DNA of 64,000 nucleotides from Lepidodermella squamata (lineage: Eukaryota > Animalia > Gastrotricha). A program made the translations under genes and the position numbers. Position 1 is the stretch's first letter. Each line of letters begins with the position of its first letter. Below are positions 23,164 through 64,000 of the stretch, one piece after another. Location of the stretch: NCBI GenBank assembly GCA_047495785.1, contig JBLDXI010000054.1, positions 496,001 to 560,000 of the forward strand. Direction: 5' to 3'. The notes beneath the pieces are model-generated. The model was not told the DNA's origin and did not search any database. It saw nothing but the letters and a program-made list of their open reading frames with translations.

Positions 23164-24179
23164 TCATGGGCGTACGATATTGAAATCAGCGCAGAAATCG
23201 TAGCATTTATTGTCTCGAATACAGCCGCATTTACGTGCTGGTCGGTAAACAAGATAGGTGTATTCAAAAATAGGTGGTAATGATCAACTTACCGAATTCG
23301 CACCTCGGTGGCCTGTAGGGCGGGACGCAAGTGCATTTATTCGGAGCAGTGCAACTTCCACCGTTCAAGCAAGGGTCGGAACATGTTGCTAGAAAGATAG
23401 GAAATATTTCAAACAAATAATGAAAAATCGGAAATACAAACGTGTTTGGCACGTCTCACCCGTGTAACCAGGTTGACAGGTGCAATTGTAGTTCGAGAGA
23501 CTAGTCATCGAAGCGGTGCAAGTATTTTGTGCGCAGGTGGGAGCACATGTAATACCTTGTAATGTACAGGTTCATCGAATTTATAGTACAATTACATTAG
23601 GATATTACTGTTAATGAGCTTGCACTGATCTCGCAGCGTTATGAGTTGGAAATTGTCGAGTGGCTTTTGGAAAAAAGAGAAACAAGCAACGCTCACTGGG
23701 CCAGCGTTACCTAGCATGAATCGGCTAACATTGAAAAGTAAGTTATAGACGCTATCCAATAGAAGCCATCGACTTACCGCGTCGCTGGCATATTCGGTGA
23801 GTTGATTGGTACGTTAAATCCAACAAAATATTTACCAGTGCAGAAAATAATCGAAGAGTTTGTAACACTGCTGTAAGACACAGCCAAGAACTGCCACGTT
23901 GTCACTGGGCAAGGTATTGTCACTCCTTGTGCCAGTCCTGTTGTACTACCCTCTCCGTAGCATTTGATGTAAGATGCATCGATTTGCAAACAACCTGCTC
24001 CCTTAAAGGTGCTGCTAAACTCGAAAAGTTGGCAGTTGTTATTCCTGCACGATGATTTAATCCATACACCGACTGTCCACGAGGAATATCCGTTGAATGT
24101 GCCATTGGAAACGTATACGTTGCTAGAATTGTCCAGTTGATTCGTGGCTTTGGCGCCAGCAATCGAATCACCGAATGGG
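23164..24179 (-). pseudogene. LamG-like/EGF family copy A, 5'-truncated (partial LamG, 2 EGF, Cys-rich tail)
   Basis: PFGDSIAGAKA...SWTVGVWIKSSC...WQFLAVSY exon, VACFSFF exon, two EGF exons, last exon ARKCGCIRDNKCYDFCADFNIVRP*. The 5' end is replaced by a LINE fragment. Confidence 0.82.
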
Positions 24180-24181
24180 CT

Positions 24182-24304
24182 GAAAATGTAGGAGCTGCCT
24201 TCTTCTTCTTCTTCCCGCCTTTACTGCCGGCCATCGTAAGAAGTAGGTAAGTAAGTGTACCGCTGCAGTAGCGCAAGCAGGAACACAAATACGCGTAAAA
24301 ACCT
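24182..24304 (-). mobile_element. 5' UTR and ORF1 start fragment of the Jockey/I-type LINE
   Basis: Near-identical to 56131-56254, encodes MAGSKGGKKKKKAAPT. Confidence 0.9.
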
Positions 24305-24854
24305 CAGAAAATTTAATATTCAATCGCAGATATTTAGATCATAAAAGATGTAAAAGTCAATTATCGGAAGGCTCGTATTTTTGTTGAAAATCGCCTTTCT
24401 ATTTATTGAAGTAGTGTGGATGATGTTTTTACGTCTCTGGGTACATGCAATATTGAGCTAGTCCGACTTTTCCCAAGTCAATCGATCAACAAAGCTACCC
24501 AACGCGGTATTATCGTCAACAAAAACGTGTTGCTAATTAGTCTGGTGCATAAATTAAGGCATTATTTTGTAGAAACCAACCGGTTAAAGATTTTTTTATG
24601 CCTGAAAAACGTGTTGCTAACGTGTCGTCAATACACATGTTTGACTGCTTCTCCCAATTTTTTCTCCTTAATTTCCAGTGGCTCATATTTTTTAATCTCG
24701 GCTTTTACGCGCTGAAAAATCGAAAGAAAAACCGAGCCCATCATAATTTATTAATTATACTCAAACCTCCATATTTGGATGCGTTCGATAATTCTCAGAA
24801 CGCTATTCCTTCAGGACTGCTTGGTACCGATGTATTCGTTCAGTAATTCAGATA

Positions 24855-25779
24855 CACTAGGTGGACAAAAAGATTAATACGGTACCAGCAATTATATTTG
24901 GGCGGCGTAGTTCTAGTAGGGATTCTTCTTTCATTCGGTAAATGACGATTCCTTATTCAGTTTTTTGCGCTCTATCTGCTGATATGCGACTCGAATATGT
25001 CCGGCTTTTCCGTTGGTCAAAAAGTTGGCAATTTACTTTTGCCAAATACCCTGTTTACCCCCATTTCAGCAGTTGTGAGAGGGGCTGGGCGATAGTAACA
25101 AGCAGCAACCCGCCTTGAAACAGCTGGGAATGTTGGAACTAGGCTTTTACTCGACAACACCAATACCAAGCAATCCTTGTTGTAGCTATTTTTGTAAAAA
25201 ACGCCCATTTGCCGGTGAGGGCGGTAAACCACGAGGGGTGGGACGAAACAGGGGGCTGATTTAGTTCGAATTGTGGGCTAGCGGAGCAAAAAATCTTTAG
25301 AAGTATGCTTAACCGTCACGGACAAGCATGTCTCAATGATTATGGGGACTCATTTTTCCCCTAAAACTTCCCTTATCGTCCCATCTTTAAGGGGTACCAT
25401 AAAGCCTCACCCTTTAATTGCATAAAATACCGCTCCTCAGTGAGTTACAGCCGTTGCAGGTGCCTCAAAATAACTAGAAGTGTAGGGTTCATACCCGCCT
25501 TGCATTTGCAGGTGATTTTTGACATGAGAAAATTTTCAGCTGGTGCCCAGCGCCTCACGAAACTGCTAAAATAGGGGTAAACAGGGAATTTGACAGAAGT
25601 CAGTTGTCAAACTTTTGACCAATGAAAGAGCTGGGCATACTCGAGTCGTATATCAGCAGATAGAAGGTAAAAAACTGAGTTAGACATGTCATTTACCGAA
25701 CGAAAGGGGAATGTCACCGATAATTATGCCATCCAAATATGATTTCAGGTACCGTATTAATCTTTTTGTCCACCTAGTG
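24855..25779. mobile_element. Tc1/mariner-type non-autonomous fold-back element
   Basis: TIR CACTAGGTGGACAAAAAGATTAATACGGTACC at both ends, TA flanks at 24853-24854 and 25780-25781, long imperfect inner arms (25017 vs 25570-25620). Confidence 0.9.
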
Positions 25780-26347
25780 TATATTTTGGCCATACCTAAA
25801 TATGATGAGCAATAAGGAAGCACAAACTGCATGTTGATTAGCGCCGAGCACCTTCAGGCTAGGTTTTTCATTGCCACAGGCAGTGCTTTGGATTATATTT
25901 TTTTTTAGACTCTACTTTCACTTTCACATTTGAAATGATTGATTTACGCGGGGAAGCATTTTGATTTGATTGATTGTGATTCAGCCTTGGCGAAGCAATC
26001 GAAGAACTTGATTTCAAATTCGCCGTTATTTTATTAATTTCCTGCCATTCCGAAGCCCTCAGCTTCCTGAAAATCCCGATGTTTCGTGTTTCGCGATCTG
26101 TTGTGATTTATGAATGTCGATGATTTGATTTGATTGATTTAGTCCTGGAAAATTAGGACAATGATTTATTTCGATTGATTGAAGGTTGAAGGAGGTCCGT
26201 GATTTAAGCTGTAAATCAAATCAATTCAATCTAAAGCCCCGGCCGCTCGCTCTTCTCCGTTAATCGCTCTAAAATGACCAAACGAACCTTTCGTTTGTGA
26301 ACGAAGGCGCCCGTATGCGTAAAACAGCCGCTTTTTACTCATCACCC

Positions 26348-26609
26348 TGTACATTCATGTGTACGCATTTAATAGTATTTTGTAGTCTAATATATTCTTG
26401 TACACGCGCATCTATGCGAATATAACTGTAAATTCTAAATTAATTTAGAATTTACAGTTATATTTACAGTTTAGTTTAGATTTACAGTTATATTCGCATA
26501 GATGTGCGTGTACAAGACTATATTAGACGTGTGTAAACAGTACGCGAGTGAGGAAAGCGCGCGCATTTGCCGCAGGTTTTTCATAGTGCGCGAGTTCTGA
26601 AACAGCCTG
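26348..26609. repeat. Rearranged inverted copy of the terminus of the 26703 element with an internal hairpin
   Basis: 26531-26609 is the reverse complement of 26703-26781; hairpin arms near 26383-26425 and 26487-26528; 32-bp perfect palindrome CTGTAAATTCTAAATTAATTTAGAATTTACAG at 26426-26457. Confidence 0.75.
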
Positions 26610-26702
26610 TTTTTTTCTGAATTCAATTTATATTTGTCTATTAGTCACCAACATACAATAACAATACAATGAAATAACTTCCCGCCTGTCGAACAAGATA
26701 TA

Positions 26703-29700
26703 CAGGGTGTTTCAGAACTCGCGCACTATGAATAACCTGCGGCAAATGCGCGCGCTTTCCTTACTCGCGCACTGTTTACACTTATATTCACATAGATGCG
26801 CGTGCACTAGACTATACTAGGCTATACAATATGCGTACACATGAATGTACAGCACACATAATAGCACTGCCGTAGCTATTTTCTGGCGAAAACCTTCGAG
26901 CCTTGATAAATTTGAGCTAAATTTCTATAAGTAACTTGTTTATTTCGAGGATGATGTCATGTTTTCCTGGAAAATGCTGATTGATTGGGCTCTCAAAGTG
27001 AAGGTTTCGAAAGAATTTCCCCTTTTACGTGGCTGGATATTTCAGAAACTCATGATTTCTGAGAAAATTCTGGTTTGACTTGATGTTGAATTTGTCGATA
27101 AATCGTCGATTGATTAGTCTCCTGCATTTGCATTGAAATTTCTTTCACGTTTCATGAATACAAGGCCCCGACTGCACAAGTTGAGAAAAAATGACGTAGT
27201 TTAAACCACTGGCGAATGTTCTACATCGAGTAAGGACAGGAAATCAAGGTTTGCAGTTCATTACGCGGAATTAACGTAGCAGTCTGATTTCGTGCATAAC
27301 TATGCGAAATTTCCACAAAATTAATGCCATGAAATCTAGGACAAAATGATGAAGGATAAAGAAATAAAAATTCGTGGCTGGAATTCTTAAAATATTCTGA
27401 AAACCCCAGAAAAAGAGAAAAATTGGCGTTTTCCAGCCTTCAGTCTCCTGCATCTCCGAAAAACCGAGGATGGTAATTGCATTTTTTCATTTCATTAAAC
27501 AGCCCAAGGGCTGCTCTACACGGCTGGTCAGAAGCGCCGAAAGTCTAACCACGTGAATCGCAAGGGGACGCAAGTCAAATTTCACAAAAAGGGTCGTAAA
27601 GAGGCCTTTTTGGTGAAAACGGGTCATCTTTGCGACCCTCCTTCTAGGAATCCCGTGGATGAATTCTTGATTTCTTGATATCTTCAGATAGCCCAAGATG
27701 TGCTCTACTATTCTGTCTGGTCGCGCCGAAAGTCTATCCACGGGATTCTTAACGAAATGCATGTCAAATGTCGCAATAATAACGTGGTAGAGAGGCAGTT
27801 TCCGGCTGCCAACGGGTCATCTTTGCGACCCTCCTTCTAGGAATCCCGTGGATGAATTCTTGATTTCTTGATATCTTCAGATAGCCCAAGATGTGCTCTA
27901 CTATTCTGTCTGGTCGCGCCGAAAGTCTATCCACGGGATTCTTAACGAAATGCATGTCAAATGTCGCAATAATAACGTGGTAGAGAGGCAGTTTCCGGCT
28001 GCCAACGGGTCATCTTTGCGACCCTCCTTCTAGGAATCCCGTGGATGAATTCTTGATTTCTTGATATCTTCAGATAGCCCAAGATGTGCTCTACTATTCT
28101 GTCTGGTCGCGCCGAAAGTCTATCCACGGGATTCTTAACGAAATGCATGTCAAATGTCGCAATAATAACGTGGTAGAGAGGCAGTTTCCGGCTGCCAACG
28201 GGTCATCTTTGCGACCCTCCTTCTAGGAATCCCGTGGATGAATTCTTGATTTCTTGATATCTTCAGATAGCCCAAGATGTGCTCTACTATTCTGTCTGGT
28301 CGCGCCGAAAGCCTATCCACGGAATTTGCAAAGAGACGAAAGTCAAATAATACAAAAAAACGTCGTAGAGTGGCCGTTTTTCGGCTGAAATGGGGTCAAC
28401 TTGGCGATCCTCTCTCTAGAAAACCCGTGGATGGAATTTTGATATCTTGGCATCGTTAGATAACCTGATAGCTACTCTACAAGGCTGGTCGTAAGCGCCG
28501 AAAGTCTATCCACAGAAATTGCGAGGGGACACAAGTCAAATGTCGCGATAGAGAGGCTGCTATTTGGGCCAACTTGGCGGCGTTTCTTCTCAACAACCCG
28601 TCGATAAATTGTTGATTTCTTGCTATCGTTAGATAGCCCAAGATGTGCTCTACAAAGCTGGTCCAAACCGCCGAAAGTCTAACCACGGGAATCACAAAGG
28701 GGCGCAAGTCAAATGTCGCAGTAAGGCCGCTTTTGGCTGAAATCGGATAAACTCAACGGCCCTCTTTCTTGAAAGCACGTGAATGGAGTTATTATTTCTT
28801 GGCATCGTTAGATAGCCTAAAACCTAATCCACAAGGCTGGTTGGAAGCGCCGAAAGTCTATCGTGGGATTGCTTTCATTAGAGTGATTACAAATGAATTC
28901 AAATTTTTGAAGTCAAACCCACTAGTTGAAATAATTTTCATAATATCTGTTTTGCAAATTCGAAATTAACTAATAGCCGCATTAGGAAACTGTCCGCTTT
29001 GAGATTTTCTTCATCGGTCAAACGGCTTCCTAGATATTATTTTGCAAGAGGACGGCTTAATTCTTAGCGATATTCCCATTTCTGACTGCAGTAGCATTAC
29101 AGTATTATCGTGTTTGATATGCGTATGGCGCATATATCCGCTTGCATGCAATATAAAACGTATAACGCCATAACTGCACATTGTGTACGCATTACATTTC
29201 GTACACTCATAGCGGTGGTTGCGCTAACGATACCAGGAGTTACTAATTTCGCCCAGCGGTTAGGAGCAGACTGGATCGAATGTCCTAGGCGAAAAATTTG
29301 CGAAGATAGTCGTTTTTATACTACTTTTGTGACATTTCTACATGAGATTCACCGTGGAAAGAACCGTTTGCTTAGTTCCCATCTGTAGGGCGTTTCCAGT
29401 GCTGTCCAACGATACCAAGGTATCAAAAATCCACCCAGTGGTTACAGCCGTTGATGGACCGAATGTCACCCGGTTGAGGGAAAAGTTGCATGTCGTGCAT
29501 ATCGTAGTATCGCCATTCCAAGACATTTTAAATTAGAAATCGTAATATGTGCGAGCGAATCGAGCTTAAATTTATTGCGGAATTATCCGCTGGCGAGACT
29601 CTAAGAAATTGATTCAAATCAAATTTTCCGCATGTGGTCTATCCTGTAGAGCAGGTCTTGAGCTGTTTAATGCAGTGGTTTTCAAATCCGGCCGCATACG

Positions 29701-31485
29701 GCCGGCAGAGGTCTGCCTATCTCTTGCATTGCGTGCGGCCGGTCGAAGGCATTAGTCCGGGATTTCACAAAATACAAAATGTGTACAAATTTCGAGCAAA
29801 ATTCCACGTATCCGGATGAAAAATAACCACAATTTTCAGAAATCTTCCCTATAAACTCGAAAACTCCGGTAAGGTCCTATTTTATCATTTCGAGCGGCCG
29901 GTTGAGGGTTCAAGAGGCAAAGCAGCCGGAAAGGTCGCCAGCCGACCGCCGTTTTTAGCCGGGACCCAGGAGTGTTAAGTCCACGGGGGACCAATGTCAT
30001 CCGGTTTGCGGGGAAATGTCCAGTTCACATCACACGTCGACAATATTTCGGGCCTCTTGCTTTGATGAACAAGCCTTGTAGAGCATGCGTTTGGCGTCTA
30101 ACGATACCAAGAAATCGTGAATCGACCAAGAAAAACAACCGTTCACATTCCCTGTGATACGGCTAAAGTTTTTCGAGCAGAAAAATCTAGGTTTGTTGAG
30201 AGTGTTTCGGGCTCTCTAACAGTAGCAAGAAATCGTAAATTCGCCTATTAGTTACATGTCCTTGAGTGCCCAAATGTCGCCAGGTTTGCCAGGCGAGTTA
30301 CCAGCTATGTAGAACAGGACGTTGGCTATCCAACAATACCAAGAAATCAAAAATCGATCCAGTGGTTCAAGCATTGTGACACCAAAATTGCGTCTCAAGA
30401 AAAATCTGAAAATCAGAACTTGTCGCTCTTGCAGCAAAACCTGCTGATTTTTCGTCTACTGTCCTCATTTACCAAACTATCCTCGAATACAAAAGTTCAG
30501 CCTACTATAAGACCTATTACTTTAGGCTGGTCTATTGTTAGATTAGATCTATCGACGCAATTTCGACGTCACTATGAATTTCCCCGAGAGAGTGAATGTC
30601 ACTCGGTTTGAGACAAAAACTACATTTTCGGCGCAGTTTTCCTTGCTGTTCTGAGACTTCATTAGCCGGCAGCTTTCAGGCGCACTGGTCCTATCCTGCG
30701 CAGAATTTTCAATGCATTCTAGCATTATAAAAAATTCGAATTTCCAGCCGATTAAAGCTTGATGACGTTCAAAGACTCTAAATGTATGATTTTGACTATT
30801 TTTAGAGATTTATGGGATCGTTGCAGATAACCCAGCCACAATAATTTTGTTCTCACCCTTGAGATTCATTCTCCTGATCCTCAACTCTTATTTTCAGCGG
30901 AAAAACTGCATCATCATCCCCGAAATTAACATGCTACACTAATTAATAACTCAATGCTGGAAAACTTAAATATCCCTCATTTTTTGAGCTGTAAAACAAG
31001 CCATCGCTTGAACTCATCTCATTTTGCCGTTATCTGGCGCCTTCAATGTTTCTCATCGTTTCAACATTTTACTGAACTGCCATCTAAAGGTGTCATACTA
31101 ATTATTCAGCTGCTCAGCGACGAATGTAAGCAACAAATCAAGTCCAATCGTCCCTTAAAAACTCGGTTTTTTCAAAGACCAGCCAATCAATAAATTGATT
31201 CTCTGGCAATCAGTTAATCAAGGGCCATGGCAAACGATAGTCTCAGAAAAAACCACGAAAATCAGAAAATCTTTCGTAAAAACCACGTCAAATTATTTAT
31301 GGTCGAAGAATAACGTGAAAAAGCTATGCTGTAGTACTGATATGTGCCTGCAGTACATTCATGTTTAGTGTGCAGTGGTACTATGTATACTGTGTTGTGG
31401 GGTGTAAACAAAACAATGCGCGCGCTTTTCCCCGCGCGCGCATTTGCCGCAGGTTTTTAGTGTGCGCCATATCTGAAACACCCTG
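26703..31485. mobile_element. Large non-autonomous TA-flanked TIR element (CAGGGTGTTTCAGA ends) carrying a 193-bp tandem array
   Basis: TA|CAGGGTGTTTCAGA...AACCTGCGGCAAATGCGCGCG at left, its imperfect reverse complement ending CACCCTG|TA at right; no transposase ORF seen. Confidence 0.7.
27500..28870. repeat. 193-bp tandem repeat array (near-identical core ~27620-28320, diverged flanking units)
   Basis: Identical units begin at 27764, 27957 and 28150; GCCGAAAGTCTA recurs through 28860. Confidence 0.95.
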
Positions 31486-31487
31486 TA

Positions 31488-32350
31488 CAAAGTGACATAG
31501 ATGGCACGCGGTTGCGAGACGACATGCGCTTGCCGGCGGCGGTGCGCCGAGGACGCTAGTGGGCGAGCTAAAGGAATATTTATCGTCTACAGATGAATAG
31601 ATGGAGTGGATTAATCAGAGATAGAGGAGTGCAGCTAGAAAAAAAGAGAAAAGAAAGGAAAAGAGTAACCATGATCATAGAAAGACGGAAGAGACGCGGA
31701 TCACACACCGAAGGTGGGCAGAGGGCAGAGAAGCCTGCTGGCGATCAGGGCCAGCGGAGACCGGGGCACCGGGTTCGCAGGGAGGCGTAGTTGCTCGACA
31801 GCTTCGCGGATCGGGAGGACAAAGCGTTGTCGGCGTAACGGCGCTGCGTCTGTTCAAAGAAACGCGGGAGACTTGGGACACCGGCGCGACGTTCGAGGCC
31901 CGAGACTCTGACGCGGTCATCGCGGCGGACGTTCGCTCAGTAGTGCCCGAAGGTAATCGTTCTGAAGGACATCAAGGCGCTTGAAGTGCCGCTTGGCTGC
32001 AGTGCTCAAGACGATGTTGCCATACATTGACGTGGTTCGAACAAGGCTCAGATACAATGCGCCACCGGCGAGAAAGGCGATAAATTGCGAGTGCAGCGGG
32101 TGATCACGCGGTCCATAAGGGCCTTCCAGGTCAACTGATAGCATTGAGATGGACACCAAGAATGCGCATGATTGGTACCTCGAGCCAACGAGAGTGAGTT
32201 GGGCGTCGTATCTGCGCCACGAATGGCATCACTTCATTCTTGGGTGCATTAAACCTTTTCCGCCAGTCATGGGCCCACGTTGATACCCGGTCGACCTCAG
32301 TCTGGGTAGCACGCTCAGCTTCTGGAAAATCCACCCTTTCACCGACAACG
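31488..32350 (-). mobile_element. Old, frameshifted 3' portion of a LINE related to the 56-kb element
   Basis: Fragments TQTEVDRVSTWAHDWRKRFN, RILGVHL, YLSLVRTTSMYGNIV, RLDVLQNDYLRALL match the young RT C-terminus; pyrimidine-rich 3' UTR and GCCGCCGGCAAGCGC motif conserved. Confidence 0.88.
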
Positions 32351-32920
32351 GTTAGGTAAATAAAGGCTGAATAAAGGCTTTGAAGGCTATGAACTGCCAA
32401 GCATTGCTCATCGCGATAATTGGAACGCATTGTTACCGATTTGAAATAACCCGCATTTTCGCTATCCGTCTAATAGTCACATTCAGACATTCGATTATAT
32501 TAAATCGGCTTCAAATTATCAGAGGATACTTACTACTAGTTTATTGAGTATTACATGAGAGAATCTTTAGGTACATTACATTCTGGAAAGAAAATGTAAA
32601 ATAAGACCAGAGAAATTATTGTCAAATTCCAAAGCTGTAATTAGTGCTTCCTGGGGCGTTTTGCATACCGTGAAAAAATAGACAGCTGACGTAAAATAAG
32701 CACACAGGCTGTCAAGCATGCCACAGAACTCGATGAATTCTTAAAATACTTGAGGAATTAATGAACAGAGATGTGATGGAAAAGGGTGGAAAAGAGTAGA
32801 GATCGAAAGGATGTCATCAAAGTAGTCGCAGAGGCGTAATTCCGGTTATCTGATCACTACGCCAATTTGATTATTCTGTATTTGCCTTAGTGGCATTGTT
32901 GCTGCATTACCAGAGTCCAG

Positions 32921-35900
32921 TCATGGGCGAATAATGTTGAAATCGGCGCAAAAATCGTAACATTTATTGTCTCGAATACAGCCGCAATTTCGCTCTTCAA
33001 ATGATTAAGAGCGTGACTATCATCGAAAACATCTACAGCATGATTCACTCACTGTATTGGCATCTCGGCGGCTTGTATGGAGGGATGCAGGTGCACTGAT
33101 CTGGCGCTGTGCATGATCCGCCACTCATGCACGGTTCGGCGCATATGGCTAAATTTTAACAAATAATCCGCTGAAGCAAATCGATCCGATTAATAATAGG
33201 ATATTTAACCTTTATCGCAAGCTTCGCCGGTGTAACCAGGCTTGCATGTACATTTGTAATTCAAAGCGTTCGTTAGCGAAGCAGTGCATGTATTCGGCAG
33301 GCAGTTGGGAGAGCACGTTATTTCTGTGAGAAAGAATAACGTCCATTGAGTGGAATCAGCGATTGTTAACTCTTACGGTTTATGAGTTCGCATTGATCTC
33401 TCAGCTTCAAAAGTTGAACATTGTCTAGGGCTTCTCGGTGGAAGGAGAAGCAGGCCACGTCAATTACGGCGTAGTAGAATGGGCTGGCTAGTCTATGGAA
33501 AAAAATAACCGTCAGCCTTCACAGGGGTGGGGAGGGGGAGCAAGAAAGTTTGCTGCATGTTCCCTCATCTTTCTTTAGTGAGTAACATTTTACCACGAGT
33601 TCTGAGTTATAACATTACGGAAAAATTGCTTTAAGATCTCATTTAAACCTATTTTATACCATATTTAATAAAATTATGAGCTCCTGAATTTTCATGATGC
33701 AGAATTAACCCTCTGTTTACCCCGATCCTTCTATTGAAATAGAATACGTCGTCTTACCGTCTTCCAAGCGTAATCTGCGGAGTGGTTACAACGGCCCGAT
33801 TGCTAAAACCCATGAAATATGACTTGTCGCAAAATACAATCGAAGAATTTGTTGCACTGTTATAAGCCAAAGCCACGAACTGCCATTCGGCTAGAACGCA
33901 AGGAAGTGAGTTCCTGGGCGAAGATGAAAGGTACCATTGCACATGAGTGGAATTAAATTGCCAGGACCCTGCTCCAGCCAGTGTCGTATTTACATACCCA
34001 AACAACGCACAGTTGCTCTTCGGGCAGTATGATTTAATCCACAAAGCCATTGTCCAAGAAGTAGTCAAATCGAACGCATCGCTGGAGAAGGAAACAAAAC
34101 TTTCGTTGCCCACTTTGTTTACCGCTTTGGCGCCTGCATCCGAGTTACCGAACGGGCCGCTGACATCGAAAGACGTCCCATTGAATACTGCAGGTATTGG
34201 ACCGTACTTAGAACCACTAATATCGCGATCCGTCCAAAGTCCATTCAGCGGCCAGTAACCCACGATATAGGGAAAATAATTTGCGATGTTACTTCTAAGT
34301 TGTTCAACAATGCTGGCTGCGGCTGGGCTTGAAACCGGGCCGGTTGCTGAGATAAGATCGAGTGAACACGCGCGAAAAATAGTCATACTACTCACAGTTT
34401 TGGCAGGAACTACCGGTGTAGCCAGCTTTGCAGGTACATGAATAGCCTTCGCTTTTAGTCACGTCACCAGTACAAGTAGCTGGGTCACAATTGACGGAAC
34501 ATGTGATAGCTGTGATTAAAAATATCATTCAATCATTTTAAATGTCATTTAAATGAATCGATTGAAATAGGTTTCTTGCTCAAAAATAGCAAATTTTTTA
34601 CCGTTTGATAAACATTATTCTTCCGAATTTTTGTTAACGCGCGTGTTCACGAGTTTGTAGCTTTTTCCAACAGGAACCCCATTCTTAATTTAATTCTAAA
34701 TTTAATCTAATTTTGATATAAAAACCGCCTGGAAATGGAGGCCCAGATATGTGCAAGTGAATAGCGATTACACTCGAAGAAGTTTTGCTGGAGGAAATGC
34801 AACGTGCGAAGTACAAATGTGCTTGGATGTCGCGACATCCCAGCTCCTGGACTCCATTCAGGGGAAAGCTGAGAAAAACCAAAGTGGGGGCCCTGTGGAT
34901 TCTTCGGCTGGGGGCTAGAAAACACCTCAGCTCATGGATCCTACTTCGCACACTGAGGAAATATGGACAGAAGATGATGGAGTTTTTAGACATACATAGA
35001 TAATATACGCGTGATTAGGCATTGGAGAAGCATTGTCCACTTTTTAGCGGACCTAACCAACCGAAACCCGATACAACTTAATAGACGCAAACCCAAGTCA
35101 TAAATAAAACCTCACTGTTTATAACTTGACACTGCCGTTTCAAGGTGATCATTTGGTCGCTAGTCAGGGCAGCTCTGTGATAGGAAAAACAGGCAACGTT
35201 CATTGGAGCGAATAGCAAAGTCTGCATGGTCGGCGTATTCAATCTGAAAGAATCAAAAGTTATAATTTCAAACATTTTTTTTCGGAGAAAATAACACCGA
35301 GCAGTAACTTTGCGGATCAGGGGGACGAAATTTTTCAGGGAATGTTGTTCAATCTACAATTCCAGTTATATCGGATCAAAGAACAAGTTTTGATTTTTCG
35401 TTCATTGATTTTTTAGAAAATCCTTTATGGAGTAGATATGGTGTTCTCGCGTGAGAAAATTAATGGGAACATGGGAACACGCGCAATATAAATTCCGAGC
35501 GGTAAGAACTTGTCACTGAGGAAGCTGGGCGCTTTGTCTCTTGAAGCCTAATGCATACCTTTTCCCGACGGTGATTGTGGCTCCTGTCAAGGCTGAAGCA
35601 TTACTAAAGCCGCCCACGATAGTTTCGTCGCAAGCTACGGTTGAAGAGTTCGTCTGAGAGTTGTAGGATAACGCCATGAACTGCCAAACATTGCTCAGAG
35701 GGCAAATGATATTAACAGCTATTGGAGCTACTGCTGAACCTATTGGATAATGTACCAAAGCCGACTCGTTAAGCTGCCAAAATCCGGCTCCCCAGTCAGA
35801 GCCGGTGAAGTATTCGAGCAACGGACAGTTTTTGGTCACGCAACCTGACTTCATCCAAATGCCGATAGTCCACGAGTGATTGCCGTTGAAAGCTGAACTG

Positions 35901-36187
35901 CTATTGAAGCTCAGGAAGCTATAGCCATCATAATTTTGATTCAAAGCTTTAGAGCTCGCATTTGTTGAACCGAAAGGTCCAGGTGAGTCAAATAGTGTTC
36001 CGTTCGGTGAGGCTAAAATTCCATATGAAGACCCGCTAACATCTCGCATGCCCCACAGTGAATTCAGAGGCCAGTAGCCGACGATATTCGGCGAGGCGAT
36101 GTTATCTCTGAGTTGTTGCAAAACCGTAGATTGGGCCAAAAATGTTTGGCACAGATGGACGAATATGAATAATTTCAGTAAATCCAT
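32921..36187 (-). CDS. LamG-like/EGF family copy B, intact: signal peptide-LamG-EGF-LamG-EGF-EGF-Cys-rich tail (8 exons)
   Basis: MDLLKLFIFVHLCQTFLA signal; two IVGYWPLN..D.SG..NGT.FD..GPFG..SWT..W.KS.C..WQF.AL.Y domains (ConA-like/LamG_3 pattern); EGF motifs CTCKxGYTGxxC; junctions GT-AG and in frame; ends KRNCGCIRDNKCYDFCADFNIIRP*. Confidence 0.85.
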
Positions 36188-37517
36188 TTTTTATACAAGG
36201 TTGCGGTATTTTCTCTAAACAAATTACCCCTGCGGCAGCCTTATGTCTGAGATGAATGATTTCCCAAAAAATTGTCTTTATTCAGTATTATCGGTTGGAT
36301 TGTGTTTAATTTAGTCTGCTCTGCCCCACTTTCCTCCAGCGCTAAAATAGCGCTAGACGAATCGAATATCGCATTTATGAATGTTACGCTGACAAACAAA
36401 CGTGTTGCTACCAAGTCGTCAAAACAAAGCAGTTCAGCTGGATCCTTTTTGCAAATTACGTATTGGGCTTTCTGCTGTTTTATCGTTAACAGTTGAAAAT
36501 ATTTCTTTCCTGCAATTTGGACCTCTACGTCTGAGAATATTGTCTCGTATCAGTTTTTCGGGTCCTGTATAATAATTATAAAGCGTTTATTTTATGTGTC
36601 GCTTTTCCCAAATTTATGTTCGAATAAGGCAAAAATCGAAAACGAGTTGCTAACGAGTCGTCAAAACAATGAAAACAAAGTCTGCTTCGAAGTCTACACT
36701 CGGTATCCTTGTCGTATTTTGGTGGCAGGGGCAATAAGTTTGGTGCGCACGCGTAAAATTTTAATCAAATTTAATCAGCGTCGAGGCCTTTCGCCAAGCC
36801 TCGGCAAGTTTGATGAATCTATATGCTTTACGGTTGAAATTATGCAGCCGTTATACTATAACTTCAACTTTCGATTTCTGGCAGGCGGAGGCTGTAGCGT
36901 GCATAGTGCGTAGCATCGCCGTTTCTCGTCACCTCTCACAGAATTTTGCGGATGCGCTACTTGTCAATCTTCATGGATCAATTTATTTAATCGCAATATT
37001 TCTTTCACAACTGTGCCAGCTTGGCTAGTATGATCATAAAATCTTATACTTGTATGGTATAACATGAGTAAAAAGTTCATATCTGAACGGAGCCGACCAA
37101 GATTTACGAAGCGAAACGAGCGGAGGCGAGTTGAGATGAGTAAATCGAGTGCGGCGAATTTTATACCGTAAAATATCGAATTGTCATAGCGACTCGACCT
37201 ATATTTTTGACGACAATTCTATATTTGTATGATATAACATGAGTAGGAATCTATATTTGAGTGAAGCACGAAATATAGATCGAGTAAAACGAATGAAACG
37301 AGTGAAATCGAGGCGGAACGAGCCGGCAGGCGAGTGGAGACGAGATTTCACGAGGTGAATGAGTTTTACGAGATCTATACGAGTGCTTCACGAAAATATA
37401 GGTTTCTACGAATGTTGTATCGTAAAATATTACACGGTGTCTATATTTTTCGCAACGCAAAATAAAAAATAATAAAAAATCCAACTTAAAATTTCATTGA
37501 AAAATGGCTTTCTTTTA

Positions 37518-37880
37518 ACTTTGCATCCCGCACTCGGTGCGGGAAGGAACCGTCATTCTCATCCCGCAGCATCCCGCATTTCATCCCGCAGTCCATCCCG
37601 CCTATCCCGCAGTTCATCCCGCAGTCCATCCCGCCTATCCCGCAGTCTATCCCGGACCGCGTCCCGCAGCTGAGATTATGGAGGGTGCGGGATCACGCAA
37701 CGGTCCTGCTGAAGAAGTGCGGGATGGCAGCTGCGGGATGATGTGCAGGATGGTGCGGGATAACAGTGCGGGACGGGTGCGGGACGGGTGCGGGACGATC
37801 CCGCAGCATCAGCGGGATCATCTGTGGGATGCATCCCGCAGGTCATCCCGCACGTCCCGCACTAGTGCGGGATGCAAAGT
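37518..37880. mobile_element. MITE built from ATCCCGC/GCGGGAT repeats
   Basis: TIR ACTTTGCATCCCGCACT / AGTGCGGGATGCAAAGT, TA at 37516-37517 and 37881-37882; internal motif repeated in both orientations. Confidence 0.82.
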
Positions 37881-38899
37881 TATATTTCATTTTCGTTCAT
37901 TTTTCTCATTCGTTCGAATTTCGTCTCGTTTTGAACGTCGATTTTCTGCCCGACCGAAATTCTGCTCGAATTTCCCGAATAAATGCTCCTAGAATTCTGT
38001 TCCGATTGGCAAGGCTGCCGCATTTGATGCCGAATGGTTCAATAACTCATCAACCCTGACACCTGCTTCTTTCGAAATCAATCGAAATCCCGAAAACCTT
38101 GCGCCTGTACAATCCGAAGAAACTGGTTCGATTTGAAGGACACGTATGCGGCGATGAAAGAAGCTCGCGACAGCAGTCCGTCGGAATTTCATCTCTGGTT
38201 GTTGAAAATGGCTCAGTTTCGGAGCGGCGCGTCGCAACGGTGTTTGGTTCGTCGATGTTTTCAACGTCATCGAATCGGAACTGTCTCTGGCAGAGTGCTC
38301 CAAGTACAATCAAGTTTCAAGGTGGTGATTTCTGCGAATTGGGGGTCAAAATGCTGTCCGATTTTCTGGATTTTCTGCTCAGTGCTCCCGGCGCGTTCTA
38401 TCGATCTAAGGTGACGACTTGCTGACCGTACCTGTTCGATGATCTTCTGCGCGATCCGACTCACGAATCGCTGCGAATTCATGCACAACGGGGACGAAAT
38501 GCTGCCCGATTTTCCGGAATTTTTCTGAAAAATTCTGGTTCCTACGGCGAATTTTTGCAGCCCGCTTGCCAAGCTGTCCCCGTCTAAATTATTCTCAAAA
38601 TTGAATGTTTCCATTTTCTTTCATAATAAATTGCTTTGCGAAAACTATATCCCTGTGTTTTTCCGTTAGAATTAGCTGTTTCAAGACCTCGGAAGTATTG
38701 GGCTTGGAAAGGAGCATCTATATTCAAAATATAGATTTTCCAGGTCAAAAATATAGATACACCTAAATCTATATTTCAGATATAGATCAGAAATATAGTT
38801 CATATTCAAATCTATATTTGAAGTATGAAAAAATATAGATTTGTGTTTCAAGGTTAAAAATATAGACACAGTGTTATATTTCCTCGTTTGAAACTTTCA

Positions 38900-39160
38900 T
38901 TTAGTAACCATTTTTTAGGCGGGAAAACGCATTGTTTTCTGAGAGGTTCATTCATAAATAAAACGCGGGCGATTCAAACGAGCATTTTTACTGTGAATTT
39001 CCACGCTAATACTCTATTTTCGCGATATTTCTCACCAAATCGCGTGCGACAAAAAAGCTTTATTTTCATGAATAGATGCTCGTTTGAATCGCTCGCGTCT
39101 CATTTATGAATGAACCAATCAAAGAACAAACGGTTTCCCGCGCAAAAAAGTGGTTAGTCA
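38900..39160. mobile_element. Fold-back MITE-like inverted repeat
   Basis: GGTTCATTCATAAATAAAACGCGGGCGATTCAAACGAGCAT pairs with ATGCTCGTTTGAATCGCTCGCGTCTCATTTATGAATGAACC; outer arms TAACCA.TTTTT..GCGGGAAA. Ends approximate. Confidence 0.7.
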
Positions 39161-41097
39161 CAACTTTATTATGTGTTCTTGCAGTGTAAGAATGAAATTA
39201 ACTCGGCTTCCTTACAAGAGGACTAGAGCAAGACAATGCACAATTATTCGATAATAAGTGACAGTTAGTGGCTGATTTTAATATGTAACGACAGAGCTAC
39301 AACGCATGCATATTCTACTAATATTCCACTTATACATTAGAGGCCAGCCAGGAGGCCTTTCGAGCAGAGTAAATATTAGAGAACTGGTCGTGGAGGAAAT
39401 GTCATGGGCGTAAAATGTTAAAATCAGCACAAAAATCGTAACATTTGTTGTCGCGAATACAACCGCATTTTCGAGCTGGTCAGAAAATAGAGAGGTGTAC
39501 ACAAAACGGCTGTATGATCAACTTACCGAATTCGCACCTCGGTTGCTTGTAGGGCGGGACGCATGTGCATTTATTCGGAGCAGTGCAGCTTCCACCATTA
39601 AAACACGGGCTAGAACATATTGCTGGAAACAACGGAAAAATTGTTCAAATAAAATAAAATAAAAGCATATACAGGGTGTTCTTTTTAAAACCGAACATCC
39701 GCCGCGCGCGTTGGAAAATCGCGTGCTACCGCAAATTTTTATGCACAAAATTAAATATCCTTTTAAAAATATTTTTATTTTATTATATTAATAATTTCTT
39801 TTAAATAAAAATTTTGTTGCTACGGAAAAGCGTGCTGCGCGATGCCGCGCGTTTTCGCGTTGTAGCCGCTCCGCGCACCGCAAGTTCCCCGGCGCGCAAC
39901 TTCATCCCCGTAATTCCGCATTTTATCACCGGTGACGACACCTTTGTTAGTGTTTTTCTGATAGCATTTCAAGCATTTAATAAGGCAGCCGGCGTCATTT
40001 TTTCTAAATATGGCTCAATTAGACGTATGCGCTAAGCCTAAACAAGCCATTTTTATGCCGTTTTTCGCAGATCTTAAGCGTTTAACCCCGGAAACTTTCA
40101 CCAAAGTGCGGTTATACCTTGCGGAAACAGTGTTTCTAAGTACAGTAATGTATTCTCTACAAGATTACCACAGCCGTTTTTGTAGGATGATGGTTATTTT
40201 TAGCACGTCTGCCCTAACAGCCAGCCGGTCTTTCAGAGCATAGATCTCATTATCACCATCTTCAAGGAGGTCTATGCCTTCAAATCACCCGTCAAAAACA
40301 CTGTCTCTCATTGTTTTCTTGTAAAGCAGAGTAAATACTACTTAGTTACCGTTACTTTTTGGAGGGTCACCGCGGTTTTTCACTTGCTGCTGCTATGGAT
40401 AAATTCTGTCGATAAATGGAGTTTTTCGGGATATTCGGAACATTTACATTGTTAGCAAACAATTCAGCGGTCAAATGGGGGCTCAAATGAGTGAATTCAC
40501 TAGGAGACATAAATACTTTGACAATGAAACAAGAAAAAGTCGGTGTTGCCATACTAACTCGTGAGCAGGAGGGACTTCCTTCTGCCATACCTGCTGTGTT
40601 AGATCTCATCCTCTGGCCAGATGAACGATCTTCAAGATGGTCCATGTCATGAATTTTGCTTAATTAGCATTGTTACTCATTGTTTTCTGGTAGAATAGAG
40701 TATAAATTTCTTATGGTGCTTTCACAAATGCGTCCGACGAGCGTCCGACGTTTTCGGCGCCCGAAGTTTCGTAATAGGCGACCAAAGTAGCGTAATAGTT
40801 GCCCGACGTTCAGATTTTCTTTCACAAACGCGCGCACTTCGGCCTGCGCGCCCGAAGTTTGAACAATAGCGCGTCCGACGCAGCGCGCGCACGCAAAACA
40901 ATGAACGTCGGATCGGAGACCCGCAAAACTACCGTCCGAAGTGCGTCCGAACCGAAGAGTTTAAACAAAAGAATCTATCGAAGAGCGGAAAAGTTTTATT
41001 GGGCTCAACAACAGCGGAAATTACAACACCATATACTACAACACATTTCAACAATTTAAGACAAAAATTCAACAAAAAATTACAAAACAATTTACAA

Positions 41098-42198
41098 TTA
41101 GTTGAACACCGTGCGACGGACTAAATCACTAATATCGAAAAACAAGCGCGATATTTCACTTTTGCTGAGAGGTGATTCATCAATGATATTTAAAATCGAC
41201 GCAAATTGTTCATTAATAGCGCGACGGCGCTCTGTAAAGAGCGGCTCGCCCTCGAGCGAGGCGATTATTGCCCGGGTAAGTGGGTCAAGTTCTTCAGATT
41301 CTTCCGCCTTCCGCTTCTTCCGACCACTGCTTGCCGCTGCTGCTGACGGTGTCGACTGTTCGATGAAGTTCGACTGCGAGTCTTGAACGCCGGCTAAGAC
41401 GGGCGGAGGGTTCAACTGACCAGCGTCGCCGGAAGAATCGCCAGTAGCATTGACTTGAGGCGTGTGAGGCGTGTGAGGCGTTTGAGGCGTGTGAGGCGTG
41501 TCGGGGCGAAGTTGCCGGGCAACTGACGCAGGTAACGCCGAAGAAACAGGTAAATTCGACTTCGTTCTGAAAGAAAAATATGAAAAATTTAAGCAATTTG
41601 TTTCCGATTTTCCGCACATTTTTCATTTAAAAAAAATAAATAAAATAACTCACTTGTTTTTGTACATCACTACGTCCGCCAGAAAGGTCATCGCCTCGTA
41701 GAAGGCGAAACGGACAGTCTTCTCAGCTGCCGAGCCGCTCGCCACGTACTGCTTGTGGCATTTAGTGAAGCGGTCGCGAAGACGCTGCCACTCCTCGCTC
41801 ACTTCTTTGTAGGTGTACGGCTGTGCCGGGGCTGACGCTGTCGCGGGCTTCATCGGAAGGCGTGTGGCCAGAGTAGCCCACAGGGCATTTTTGAAGACTA
41901 CGTCGCTGTATTTGACGTCTGACGGCAGCCAAAGCGACGGGTTGTGTCGAACAAACTCGATAATAGCGGCATGCACCTCGGAGCGATGCTGCTCGAACGA
42001 AATCGAAGACGACGCGGACGACGACGAAGAAGCCGACGAGGACGGGCGAGAATTGTTGGGCGGAACCGGTGTTGGCGGCAACTGCGAGTACGACATGTGT
42101 TGAGACGGTTGCATCATCGTGTACGGTTTGCTGTCATCGAGAGTCACCTGAGACGACGACGACGACGACGACGGAAAATAATAGCGCATGTCGTTCAT
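41098..42198 (-). CDS. Harbinger MADF/Myb-like DNA-binding protein (intron 41653-41567)
   Basis: MADF motif IIEFVRHNPSLW...Y...KNALWATLA...EWQRLRDRF...FAFYEAMTFL; NLS-like RKKRK. Confidence 0.92.
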
Positions 42199-42487
42199 TT
42201 TAACGAAAAACTAGCCAAATTCGAGTAAAAGCTGAGTGAAAGTCTAGTTTTCGGCGAGTTTTGAGTTGAGCGATGATACCCTAGCTGATGTTGGATTGGT
42301 TTAAATAACCCAAAATCGCGGCATTTTCGGACGCCATGTTGAGAAATCAAAGGGCGCACCGCCAAGATGGCGGCAGGCGCTGCGTCAATGCGCGGCCGCC
42401 ACGCTCGTCGTCATGCTCGCCTCGCCTCGCTCACCTGGATGCCACTAATCTGATTAAGAAAATTTAATTAATTTCTCTTCTCCTGAA

Positions 42488-43984
42488 ATGATTCGCGACC
42501 GTAGACGCAAGGCTCTTCTAATCGGCTTAGCGTTGCATTTACGCCGAAAACGAGCACAGAAAAAAGTGCGTCGTTATGGCATTCACCCGGTGAATCGGCA
42601 ACGGCCAATGCTGGGTCATTTCCATTGTCTACACCGCGAGCTGCTGATGGATAATGAGCGATTTCAAAATTATTATCGCCTCGATATTGCCGCATTCAAC
42701 AAACTTGTCGCACTGGTACGGCCTATTACTGCCAAGCCGTCGATATTCGGCCGGCATGGCATCTCGCTCGAAGAAAAGATGGCGCTGACCGTTCGTTTTT
42801 TAGCAACTGGAGAGTCGATGACAAGCCTGTCATACTCGTTTCGAATGGGCGTGGCAACAGTTCATTCGATTTTGAAAAGAACTATGCGTGCGATCTCAAC
42901 CGCCCTAATGCCAATTTACATGCCGACTCCCACCGCTGAAACGTGGCGAGAGAACGCCGCCGAGTTTGGCCAGTACTGGAATTTGCCGTTCTGCTGCGGC
43001 GCGGTAGACGGAAAACACTGCGTCATCGTTCGTCCGGCAAAATCTGGGAGCGAATATTATAATTATAAGGTTGGTAGCAATTTTTATTTATTTATTTTTT
43101 ATTTTATTTTATTTTATTTTATTTTATTTTATTTTATTTTATTATTTTATTTTATTTTATTTTATTTTATTTTATTTTATTTTATTTTATTTTATTTTAT
43201 TTATTTTATTTTATTTTATTTTATTTTATTTTATTTAAAAAAATATTCTCAAAATTAAATTGTAAATTTTTAATTTTAATTTTTTTGGTTTTTTTTTATT
43301 TATTTTTTATTTTTTTAGGGAACTTACTCGATTGTGCTAATGGCGGTGGTTGACGCCAAATATCGCTTCTGCCTGGTCGATGTCGGTGCCCACGGCCGTT
43401 TCAGTGACGGCGGGGTATTCAAGAATAGCGGCCTGCTGGAATATTGCAGCAACACCACGCCAACAGAGTCTATTCCTCTACCTGGTGGCAATATGAAGGC
43501 GAACCATTATTTTGTTGGCGATGCGGCGTTCGGGCTAGACTGGAACTTCCTTTCACCCTATCCCGGACAAACATCCGGAAATTTGCCGGCTAATAAGCAA
43601 ACTTTTAATTATCGTTTATCTCGCGGTCGGCGTGTCGTCGAAAACGCATTCGGCATTGCATCAGCTAGATTCCGCCTACTTCGGAAAGTGATGGAGTTGA
43701 GCCCAGAAATGGCAGAAGACGCCGTGCTGGCCATCTGTACGCTTCATAATTTCGCAATGGCCGAGGTTTCTAACTACAACATCGGCGATCGCGAGGCGTG
43801 GGACACGTGGCAGGAGATCGAGAAAGAAGGCGCGCTTCCGAATTTCGTCCCAGAGAATATTCGCGTCACCGAGAAAAAGGGTTTCGACCACGGCCAGCAG
43901 TTGCGCTCGAATTTAACCATCTGGTTCCAGTCCGAATCGGGCATGGTTGCCTGGCAGTCAAAAATGCTGAATCGAAAATTCTAA
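42488..43984 (+). CDS. Harbinger DDE transposase (intron 43070-43318 containing an (ATTTT)n microsatellite)
   Basis: LRFLATG-like HTH (VRFLATGES), GAVDGKH, YYNYK|GTYSIVLMAVVD, GDAAF, FNYRLSRGRRVVENAFG, LHNF. Confidence 0.95.
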
Positions 43985-48487: not shown

Positions 48488-51454
48488 CCGCAGTCTCACA
48501 AACAGTTACACCCGCCCGCAACTGCGGTTACCGCAGGGAAATGGATGACAGGACACGGGCATCACCACGGAATATTCCCACCGCTGCCCTGCGCCGCCGC
48601 AAACGAGTGATCAATGTCTGAATAAGATCTCGGTTATCAGTCCTAAGCGTTGTCTCAGTCATCGGCTGTTTTCAAATCTCCGGCGGATCCAGTGATACCA
48701 ATGAATTTTTCGCCGAAAATGATGCTAAATTCTCACTCTTAACAACTAACAACTCAATGATGTTAAAGTTTACATGACGTTTTGTTAAACACTCAACTTG
48801 ATCTGAATGGTGCAAATAAACGGCTGTTCATAGCCTAGCGATGTTGATTTTCCATGCTATGGATGTTAAGGATGCATTTATGAGTAAAAGAGATGCTAAG
48901 CGCTCTCTTTACTTGAAAGCAATCTTGCTATAAGGAATTCCTTACTAAGGATGTCCTTACTAAGCAAGACATCCTTAGCAAGATGGCTTCCAAGTAATGA
49001 CGCGGTGTCACTGGTATGCTTGGTGGGAATGGCTTACTCAACAATCCTTACTCAGACTTCGCCGCTTCAGACTGAGCGATCTAAGGATCTGATCTCAGAT
49101 GGACCTGTGCACCAGAGTGAGTGTCCATAGTTATGTCTATTAGGATGACAGTCCTTACTAAGCACCAAGCTACGCTGACTTGTAAACCACTATCCTTAGT
49201 AAGGAACATGACTGATGTTACGAACAGCAGTAAACGAAATGAACTGAGCGGCTAAATCATCGTAATCTAATTTTCTTTCTGATATTATGAACATGTTCTA
49301 AGAGACAGCTTTGATGATAACGGTGGTAACGCCTTTGAGATCAGCTTTAATTAGTCTATAGAAGTTAGTTACGGCCTCACTGCGGACGACGAAGTATCAC
49401 ACAAGGATGAGAGAACATCAAGGATAAAGAAGGAAGGCAACGTGTCTTCCGCATCAGCAACATCTATGCCAGTAAATTCGACATGTTTCCCCCCAGCTTT
49501 CCGTTTATTTACATGATATCACTGCCCTTTTCATCGTGAAACAGCTAGTTGCATTGCATTTCGCCCAGAAAAGGGTGCGTTTCTCTGATCCGCGGACTGA
49601 AACTTGAGCGACAAGTTTTCAAGGCCGCTTGTTATATCATTAGACTCCTCAAGACAGCAGAAAACCACGTTGCACCGCCTTCTTCTTGATTCCAGCGGTG
49701 GATTTCAACGGCAAGGAAGCGCTATTTAAGGCTCTTTTCACCGATTTTGGGTATACCACATTGCGAAAACTGAGACCGAATAAGAAAAAACGGCGCGGCT
49801 AAAACATTTAGCTCGCTTAACTGACTTGAATGATGCGCGGCAAGGAGCCGCACGCTTGCCGGTTACCTTAGGAACCAGGCGCGAAAACCCTGATTTCAGG
49901 CGTTTTAACCGCTAAAATTTAAAAACCGACGCGTCGACGTGGCAACGCGCGCTAAAATTCAAGGGCATCGTGCAATTGAAAATAAAATTAAAAATTTATA
50001 TTAAAAGTGATAAAAAATTATTTTAGTAAAATTATTTTCGTAAAATAGCCGGCAAATTTATTTTTCGCGACTACGGCAGGATGTTCGGTTTTAAAAAGAA
50101 CACCCTGTAGCGCGATATTCTCACGGGTCTGGCAAGCTTCGCCGGTGTAACCAGCTTTGCAGGTGCACGTGTAACCCGAGAGACTCGTCAGCGATCCGGA
50201 GCAACTATTCGGGGCGCAGTTGGTAGGGCACGTAATACCTATAAATAAACACCTTTCTAAAAATGTGAGAGGAGAATTTCGGATTACCATTGATGAGCTT
50301 GCATTGATCACGCAGCGTAACGAGTTCGATATTGTCGAGAGTCTCCCGGAAGAACGAGAAACAAGCAACGCTCATTGCACCAGCGCGGCCGCCAAATAGT
50401 CTGTTTTCGAGACGTTTGTGCAATATAAATATGCTATTCAAAAAAGCAATTGACTTACCGCTTCCCTAATGCCAACACCGGAGTAGTTAACGGAAGCTCA
50501 TTAGCGAATCCAAAGAAGTACTTATTAGTGCAGAAAATAATTGAAGAACTCGTAATATTGCTGTAAGCCAAAGCCAGAAACTGCCACGATGCTAGTGAAC
50601 AAGGCACCACCTTTGATGAATTTGCTGAACCATAAGAGTAGCATTTTATGTGAGTAGCGTTGATTTGCCAACAACCTGATGCCGTCATGGCGAGGTCCGT
50701 GAACTCAAATAAAGAATAAAGGGCAATTCGTGCACGATGATTTGATCCATGCACCCATTGTCCATGAGAAACCTCCGCTGAATACAGTATTGGAGAAAGA
50801 CACGTAGCTGGAATTGTCTCCTTGGTTCAGGGCTTTGGCGCCAGAATTCGAGTCGCCGAACGGGCCAGCTACGTCGAATAAAGTTCCGTTCAGTATTGCG
50901 GCTATACCGAATGTCGAACCACTGACATCGCGATTACTCCACAGTCCGTTCAACGGCAAAAATCCGACAATGCTGGGGAAAGGCGTTGTAATGCTATTTC
51001 TGAGTTGTGCAACGATTGACAATGGGGCCGGAGTTACAGCAGTGGCTGGAATTACAGAGCTTCATTTCGAGGCGTGGCGACGTATCGAAATTACTCACTT
51101 ATTTGGCATGTGCTACCTGTGTAGCCAACTTTACAGGTGCAGGTGTAGCCTCCCGGATTGGCCAAGTTGCCAGTACATGTTGACGCGACACAATTTGCGG
51201 AGCATGTTATATCTGATGGAACATTAGAATTTATTCGTGAGCTTCTAGATGCGTGGCGCGACTAATTCCGGCACGGACTGTGCCAAATTAAAAGCTAACA
51301 ATACGCCAGTATGAACCCGATGCTCATAACTCGTAGTATGATGGATTTCAGGGCCGTTTCACCTCTAGGGAAAAACCTGTAACAGGTATAAAGTCACATG
51401 AGGTGTCATTCGATAGGAAATCGTTTCGATAAAACGTAAAATATTCTTCAATCG

Positions 51455-63600: not shown

Positions 63601-64000
63601 TTAAAATCGATAAATCACTGATGATTCATCGATCTGATGATTCATCCAATCGTTACCAGCTACTGCAAAAACTACGTCATTGACCTCACTAATATGGGTC
63701 AAGTAGTGCGCGCTTCCACTAATAATAATGAAAGTACTATGCAAACCTCAGCTGCCTCTCCCCCTAGCGTGGGGGAGAGGCCTTTATTTCTTGGGGTTTA
63801 AATGTGAGCGAGGGACGATAATTATCTGTTGAAGTTGTTGGTTTCGAGAGACGGGAAGCGCGAAAGAGCTGTTGATCTTCAAGTAGGAGTTAGTCTCAAA
63901 CCTTCGCCCAAGAACGTCGGTGGCGTAGTGGTAAAAGAGGCTGCGTGTGTAACGAAAGAATGAGGGTTCAAATCCCGCAACCTACACGCATTTTTATTTT
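57677..64000 (+). repeat. Segmental/tandem duplicate of 45560-51883 (offset 12,117 bp), running off the window
   Basis: Identity extends past the LINE tail through host-element sequence, right TIR (62224), LamG/EGF exons and the tRNA-like repeat; differences seen at 47753/59870, 47940/60057, 49015/61132. Confidence 0.95.
62242..63329 (-). pseudogene. Duplicated EGF-LamG-EGF exon block (copy D) with the same 7-bp frameshift
   Basis: Matches 50125-51212. Confidence 0.85.

Follow-up and report, generated by a model that had tools for sequence, protein, structure and literature searches.

A 64,000-nucleotide (nt) stretch of the genome of the gastrotrich Lepidodermella squamata (contig JBLDXI010000054.1, hereafter C54, positions 496001-560000; referred to as the window) carries three copies of a short terminal exon that encodes a cysteine-rich C-terminal peptide (the tail) in genes otherwise made of LamG-like and EGF-like exons. 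Codon-level comparison of all copies in the genome shows that very strong purifying selection acts on the tail at the level of the peptide, and that the tail is the most constrained protein segment of these genes. The window appears to hold part of a lineage-specific tandem family with 11 tail-bearing genes. The motif is new and sits on proteins of a known kind, from a phylum that has been little studied. Gastrotrichs are almost unstudied molecularly, and the most constrained part of a predicted secreted lectin-fold family is here a short, unrecognised cysteine peptide.

The three tail exons of the window, whose bounds are predicted AG acceptors and TGA stop codons, are:
23164..23237, minus strand: tail exon of gene A, read from its translation, acceptor and stop
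32921..32994, minus strand: tail exon of gene B including TGA, with a phase-1 AG acceptor, encoding (K)RNCGCIRDNKCYDFCADFNIIRP and a stop
39402..39475, minus strand: tail exon of gene D, read from its translation, acceptor and stop

Minus-strand translation of 23164-23238, 32921-32995 and 39402-39476 gives in each case x-R-(K/N)-CGCIRDNKCYDFCADFNI(V/I/L)RP followed by TGA; the first encodes ARKCGCIRDNKCYDFCADFNIVRP and a stop, the second ERNCGC...NIIRP and a stop, and the third ARKCGC...NILRP and a stop. Translations, acceptors and stops thereby confirm the limits proposed for the three exons by an earlier sequence-only reading of the window. The tail has 23 residues with four cysteines spaced C-x-C-x5-C-x3-C, and when the window copies are aligned as DNA they form a conserved block with diverged sequence on either side.

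The whole assembly (121 Mb, 151 contigs) was searched for further copies. A six-frame protein search found 11, all on the minus strand of C54, in two clusters on this one contig (519, 529, 535, 577, 581, 585, 589 and 604 kb, and 899, 916 and 923 kb). A degenerate CYDFCADFN pattern, searched with a maximum of three mismatches allowed, recovered the same 11 copies together with four three-mismatch matches elsewhere, which we attribute to chance because a reversed control pattern gave three matches in the same assembly; neither search thus found diverged tails elsewhere in the genome beyond chance. The arginine two residues ahead of the first cysteine is invariant in the 11 copies and is followed by lysine in nine and asparagine in two. 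One copy (C54:916401-916472, at 916 kb) is the sole one in which a cysteine is replaced (Cys12 to Tyr) and also the sole one whose preceding intron ends in AA rather than AG, and because these two defects coincide it is probably decaying.

Selection was measured with Nei-Gojobori counts of the proportions of synonymous (pS) and nonsynonymous (pN) differences for all pairs of copies, per exon segment, the paralogs compared being copies from one genome. The averages and the numbers of invariant columns across copies were:
tail: pS 0.558, pN 0.023, pN/pS 0.04, 19/23 columns invariant across the 11 copies
EGF core: pS 0.575, pN 0.116, pN/pS 0.20, 15/30 columns invariant
mid core: pS 0.696, pN 0.172, pN/pS 0.25, 9/26 columns invariant
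LamG exon: pS 0.629, pN 0.275, pN/pS 0.44, 23/201 columns invariant

Codon identity of the tail is 98% at positions 1 and 2 and 66% at position 3, and between subclades position 3 drops to 48-65%, roughly the saturation level when most codons are two-fold degenerate. The statement of the sequence-only reading that nucleotide differences in the tail are mostly synonymous agrees with these values. The best 23-column window anywhere in the LamG exon has at most 11 invariant columns (mean 5.3). Sequence adjoining the tail has diverged: the 60 nt of intron upstream have a mean identity of 61% (shuffled control, 44%) and 100 nt of the 3' untranslated region (UTR) a mean of 50% (shuffled control, 42%), and for many pairs both flanks are at or near the identity of shuffled sequence. 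From the saturated silent sites and the diverged flanks it follows that family-wide gene conversion is excluded and that selection acts on the peptide.

The reading also named gene conversion as something to be checked, and the check did not overturn selection: it is highly improbable that the identity of the tail comes from conversion or recent duplication, since silent divergence of the tail across the family equals that of the other exons and its introns and UTRs have drifted apart. What speaks for conversion comes from the 577-589 kb cluster. There, the 585-kb and 589-kb paralogs have identical mid-exon cores (synonymous distance, dS, 0) at a LamG dS of 0.40 and a tail dS of about 1.2, and the 3' ends of the cluster pair otherwise than in the LamG tree, which hints at local exchange between tandem neighbours. 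That the exon is non-coding, either part of the 3' UTR or an open frame that arose by chance, is the least credible explanation of all, in view of codon-periodic substitutions with nonsynonymous changes about 25-fold below synonymous ones, an acceptor that agrees in phase (phase 1) with the donor of the preceding EGF exon in 10/11 copies, and a conserved stop codon; the same substitution pattern and phases show the tail to be translated in this frame.

The picture of a near-invariant peptide on a dedicated terminal exon, joined to more variable LamG-like domains, is likewise supported. The LamG-like domains had been called rapidly diverging. They are far more variable than the tail (pN/pS 0.44 vs 0.04), but at a mean identity of 55% between LamG exons they are moderately diverged and not hypervariable. 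Positive selection on them is not demonstrated, because the mean pN/pS is 0.44 and a single recent pair comes close to neutrality (nonsynonymous distance, dN, 0.114; dS 0.14; ratio about 0.8).

Gene models were made exon by exon from tblastn with exon translations, extension of open reading frames (ORFs) and reading of junctions, with predicted splice joins. In the predicted order a signal peptide comes first, then either one or two Laminin_G_3-like units, a single EGF exon and finally the tail exon. Each LamG-like unit consists of a large exon (about 200 codons) and a mid exon (about 38 codons), with donor phases 2 and 1; the EGF exon has 96 nt and is phase 1-1, and the intron that separates it from the phase-1 tail exon measures 51-58 nt in the window copies. 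Four genes (577, 899, 916 and 923 kb) have a single unit, with the methionine and a hydrophobic leader ending in AQS within the large exon, and the truncated window gene at 519 kb likewise has a single LamG unit. In the five two-unit genes, the methionine and leader lie on the upstream unit, and the downstream large exon lacks a methionine and starts with a P/T/A-rich linker; its phase-1 acceptor (YAG|CA) is conserved in 5/5 and fits the phase-1 donor of the first mid exon. In the 589-kb gene, the large exon of the upstream LamG unit (C54:590.5-591.2 kb) has no methionine or leader, unlike its four counterparts, and the gene may have a separate first exon or 5' damage. Hydrophobic leaders of the first exons end in AQS or AQG, and LamG exons hold 4-6 N-x-S/T sequons each. 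The family members are accordingly predicted to be secreted, N-glycosylated proteins.

Single LamG exons had no Pfam match at E<=1. A profile of 14 LamG-like units searched with HMMER against 1.84 billion representatives gave 61 matches (best E 7.6e-20, none below 1e-30). When the top ten were scanned, nine carried Laminin_G_3 (PF13385; eight above the gathering score), with E down to 5e-64, and the profile-matched stretches fall in the PF13385 regions of these remote relatives. An AlphaFold2 model of the large exon alone was weak (predicted local distance difference test score 58) and all-beta; the leading Foldseek matches to it, at E of only about 1e-2, were all concanavalin A (ConA)-like (NTNHA/BoNT Hcn, laminin LG, neurexin LNS and pentraxin). 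Because the matched regions of the profile relatives are PF13385, and together with the ConA-like fold matches, we assign the LamG-like unit (large plus mid exon) as a remote homologue of Laminin_G_3, in the ConA-like lectin/glucanase superfamily. The EGF exon has the six-cysteine spacing C-x3-C-x5-C-x5-C-x-C-x8-C, invariant in 11/11 copies, all of which match PF23301, PF00008 and PF07974 at E 1e-5 to 1e-3; for one listed member the bit scores lie under the Pfam cut-offs (19.9 vs 21.5 bits, PF00008). Two EGF subtypes, CEF-type and CQY-type, differ at many positions and carry the same tail.

In a tree of LamG units, those of C54 form one clade (support 100/99, stem length 1.19), within which a LamG1 clade stands apart from three tail-adjacent clades. 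By this tree and the genome searches, the tail is shown to be confined to one monophyletic subfamily. At least 146 copies of the LamG-like exon itself are present in the genome; they lie in clusters that run on into multi-EGF, ShK-like and Sushi-containing genes. Large genes on contigs C48 and C10 combine LamG_3-like units with at least ten EGF exons, a ShK-like cysteine module, Sushi/CUB-like regions and probable membrane anchors. In the LamG tree, the clade closest to the C54 units is that of sister clusters in the same genome (contigs C7, C16, C29, C32 and C46), which combine LamG with four EGF modules. Of these modules the third ('...PPDC') matches the single EGF of the tail family best, and it is followed by a terminal cysteine-rich exon, which is a complete fourth EGF with a stop; pattern and protein searches found no tail in these clusters. 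The tail exon thus sits at the position of the terminal fourth EGF exon of the sister clusters, and only position and phase agree. As a candidate, a truncated EGF (half module) was tried for the tail and rejected: hhalign gave non-significant probabilities of 1.8% against the family's own EGF and 1.6% against the sister fourth EGF, with seven columns aligned, and descent of the tail from an EGF fragment is for that reason speculation.

Outside this genome, the top named matches of the LamG profile were uncharacterised proteins of Lingula anatina, such as XP_013404145.1 and XP_013421969.1 (E 7.6e-20 and 4.9e-19). They share with the LamG-like unit a C-terminal '...C.Q.Y...L...E......C' motif, and differ in having four LamG_3 repeats plus PAN or other domains and lacking the single EGF with a four-cysteine tail. 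A tail-like C-terminus was found in 0/61 of the remote LamG_3 relatives. The sequence-only reading did not recognise the tail motif, and the searches made for it came back equally empty: the tail had no match in Pfam at E<=10, metal-binding families included, its profile had none among PDB sequences at E<=10, the ESM Atlas gave no usable match, and a degenerate exact-pattern scan of JGI metagenome contigs returned nothing. Two word-based protein searches with the LamG exons also gave nothing, and the papers searched contained no description of this family. The nearest short relatives in ENA and Logan data reach no more than about 30-35% identity with any sequence of this genome and on that account come from other organisms. 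The searched collection seems to be without L. squamata's own proteins, so that what these blanks show is confined to the absence of the family from the other organisms sampled, and they are silent on expression.

Concerning function, we put forward, tentatively, that the C-terminus of these proteins is a constant stalk, made of EGF module and tail and rich in disulfides, which carries the diverging lectin-fold heads and lets the proteins assemble with one another or dock to a partner that they share. The tail and the fairly conserved EGF would make up a disulfide-stabilised unit, two of the disulfides probably lying within the tail. Every paralog would employ this unit for one interaction, either self-assembly of an oligomer or docking to a common matrix or cell-surface partner, and the binding of the LamG heads could diverge freely. 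The proposal is based mainly on presumably exposed polar residues of the tail (R, D, N, K, D, D, N and R, all invariant), which are kept on both EGF subtypes. Standing invariant beside the cysteines, they suggest a specific interaction surface and not mere cross-linking. Two findings weigh against a stalk of this kind. Three of the 11 tail copies lie in apparently broken genes that keep the consensus tail, so that constraint on the tail is inferred from older branches, and every module has an even number of cysteines and does not need intermolecular disulfides. The roles suggested by the sequence-only reading, a constant effector or disulfide-oligomerisation tail in a pattern-recognition, adhesive or mucus protein system, are conjecture, and the even cysteine count does not compel disulfides between molecules. 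A more specific version, in which the tail is a lineage-specific two-disulfide mini-domain serving as a universal assembly or docking tag of a constant-stalk, variable-head system in gastrotrichs, seems to us rather doubtful.

Several known systems invite comparison. Neurexins, Crumbs, agrin and pikachurin/EGFLAM are mosaics of LG and EGF domains encoded by phase-symmetric exons, with roles in secreted or cell-surface recognition and adhesion. The tail family resembles them in combining lectin-fold domains with EGF on phase-symmetric exons, and laminin LG and neurexin LNS are among its fold matches; it does not match them in that their LG domains are canonical Laminin_G_1/2 and the proteins are large, usually anchored in a membrane or bound to a matrix, and none of them is known to carry the tail. 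The secretory tailpiece of IgM and IgA and the cysteine-rich C-terminus of lamprey VLRB are constant cysteine tails that polymerise variable recognition domains. Here the likeness, a short conserved cysteine-bearing C-terminus below variable heads, is a functional analogy only, with no sequence relation; those tails use an unpaired cysteine, whereas the L. squamata tail has four cysteines. If the gastrotrich system does work in this way, it would be a recognition or adhesion system whose logic has converged on that of the IgM tailpiece and the VLRB C-terminus; a tail that acts as a tag for oligomerisation or docking would be both a new compact module and a further example of constant-tail, variable-head design. 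If the tail is not such a tag, the genes are one more lineage-specific secreted family.

The alternative that survives best, although we regard it as unlikely, is that the tail is only an intramolecular cap packed on the EGF module, giving a ten-cysteine unit that has no partner and whose conservation is a folding constraint. The even number of cysteines in the tail is in keeping with this, as are the fair conservation of the adjacent EGF core (half of its columns invariant) and the use of the tail exon in place of the sister clusters' fourth EGF exon. Against a cap, the polar non-cysteine residues of the tail stay invariant although the two EGF subtypes differ at many positions, and the hhalign comparisons above show no similarity to either EGF. 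It is considerably less probable that the tail is cleaved after Arg-(Lys/Asn) to release a small disulfide-rich signalling or toxin-like peptide. The invariant arginine, the lysine that follows it in 9/11 copies, and a size and cysteine density usual for bioactive peptides are compatible with release; the Arg-Asn of the two other copies is no dibasic site, the tail is net neutral, and a conserved, glycosylated lectin-fold protein of 300-540 residues is unlikely to be a mere propeptide. Binding of a metal ion by the four cysteines (CxC plus two), without disulfides, is very improbable: CxC motifs are typical of metal-thiolate sites and only the spacing supports such a site, while cysteines normally oxidise in secreted proteins, as this one is predicted to be, and the tail matched no metal-binding family.

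Among the three window copies, gene B looks to be the only evidently intact gene. Its model runs from 36187 to 32921 in six exons with 1629 coding nt (543 codons), all introns being GT-AG at predicted joins. Upstream of the tail exon its exons are:
35559..36187, minus strand: exon 1, with methionine, predicted signal peptide and LamG unit 1
35116..35243, minus strand: mid exon 1, from junction reading
33758..34346, minus strand: large exon of LamG unit 2, with P/T/A-rich linker start, no methionine and a phase-1 acceptor YAG|CA
33377..33492, minus strand: mid exon 2 (116 nt), C-terminal strands of LamG unit 2 with the VACFSF...QC motif, GT-AG, phases 2 and 1
33053..33148, minus strand: EGF-like exon (96 nt, phase 1-1), C-x3-C-x5-C-x5-C-x-C-x8-C

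Gene A has lost its start and about 70 residues of LamG, and in place of the 5' part of LamG stands the end of a multicopy repeat; directly upstream of the repeat end (24190-24335), homology to the 5' flank of the closest paralog of gene A resumes. The features besides its tail exon are:
23293..23388, minus strand: EGF-like exon with the six-cysteine pattern
23609..23724, minus strand: mid exon, from junction reading
23778..24178, minus strand: truncated LamG exon, homologous from about residue 71, with no methionine or signal peptide
24190..24335, no strand assigned: end of a multicopy repeat of about 145 bp, copies 96-98% identical on many contigs, including one at the long interspersed nuclear element (LINE) of the window

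Gene D has only its EGF and tail exons close together, and the nearest LamG unit upstream (copy E, 50288-51061) is about 10.6 kb off, beyond a Harbinger-like transposon and a GC-rich, probably LINE-derived stretch. Copy E is 90% identical in amino acids to the second LamG unit of the C54 paralog at 585 kb, and the 3' UTR closest to that of gene D is that of the same paralog; copy E is thus probably the former 5' part of gene D. The features are:
39527..39622, minus strand: EGF-like exon of gene D with the six-cysteine pattern
41098..43984, no strand assigned: Harbinger/PIF-like transposon genes, with a MADF ORF (minus strand, 41650-42198) and a DDE_Tnp_4 transposase (plus strand, 43334-43984)
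50288..51061, minus strand: copy E, a linker-type LamG unit with mid exon, its frame broken by a 7-nt insertion near 50710
62405..63178, minus strand: copy F, a duplicate of copy E within a 99.94%-identical tandem duplication

This tandem duplication (45557-51883 = 57674-64000, offset 12,117 bp, 99.94% identity) reaches the end of the window, and within it lie the frameshifted LamG unit and a LINE. It may have arisen very recently, or the amplification-based assembly may have produced it as an artefact. A tandem array at 27534-28862 has a unit of about 193 bp in copies that are 80-85% identical, each with the same minus-strand open frame of about 63 codons. Just downstream of gene A, two adjacent ORFs on the plus strand (21170-22278) match the homeodomain (PF00046) in three stretches, with E 1.6e-11 and 5.1e-15, and are possibly exons of one multi-homeobox gene.

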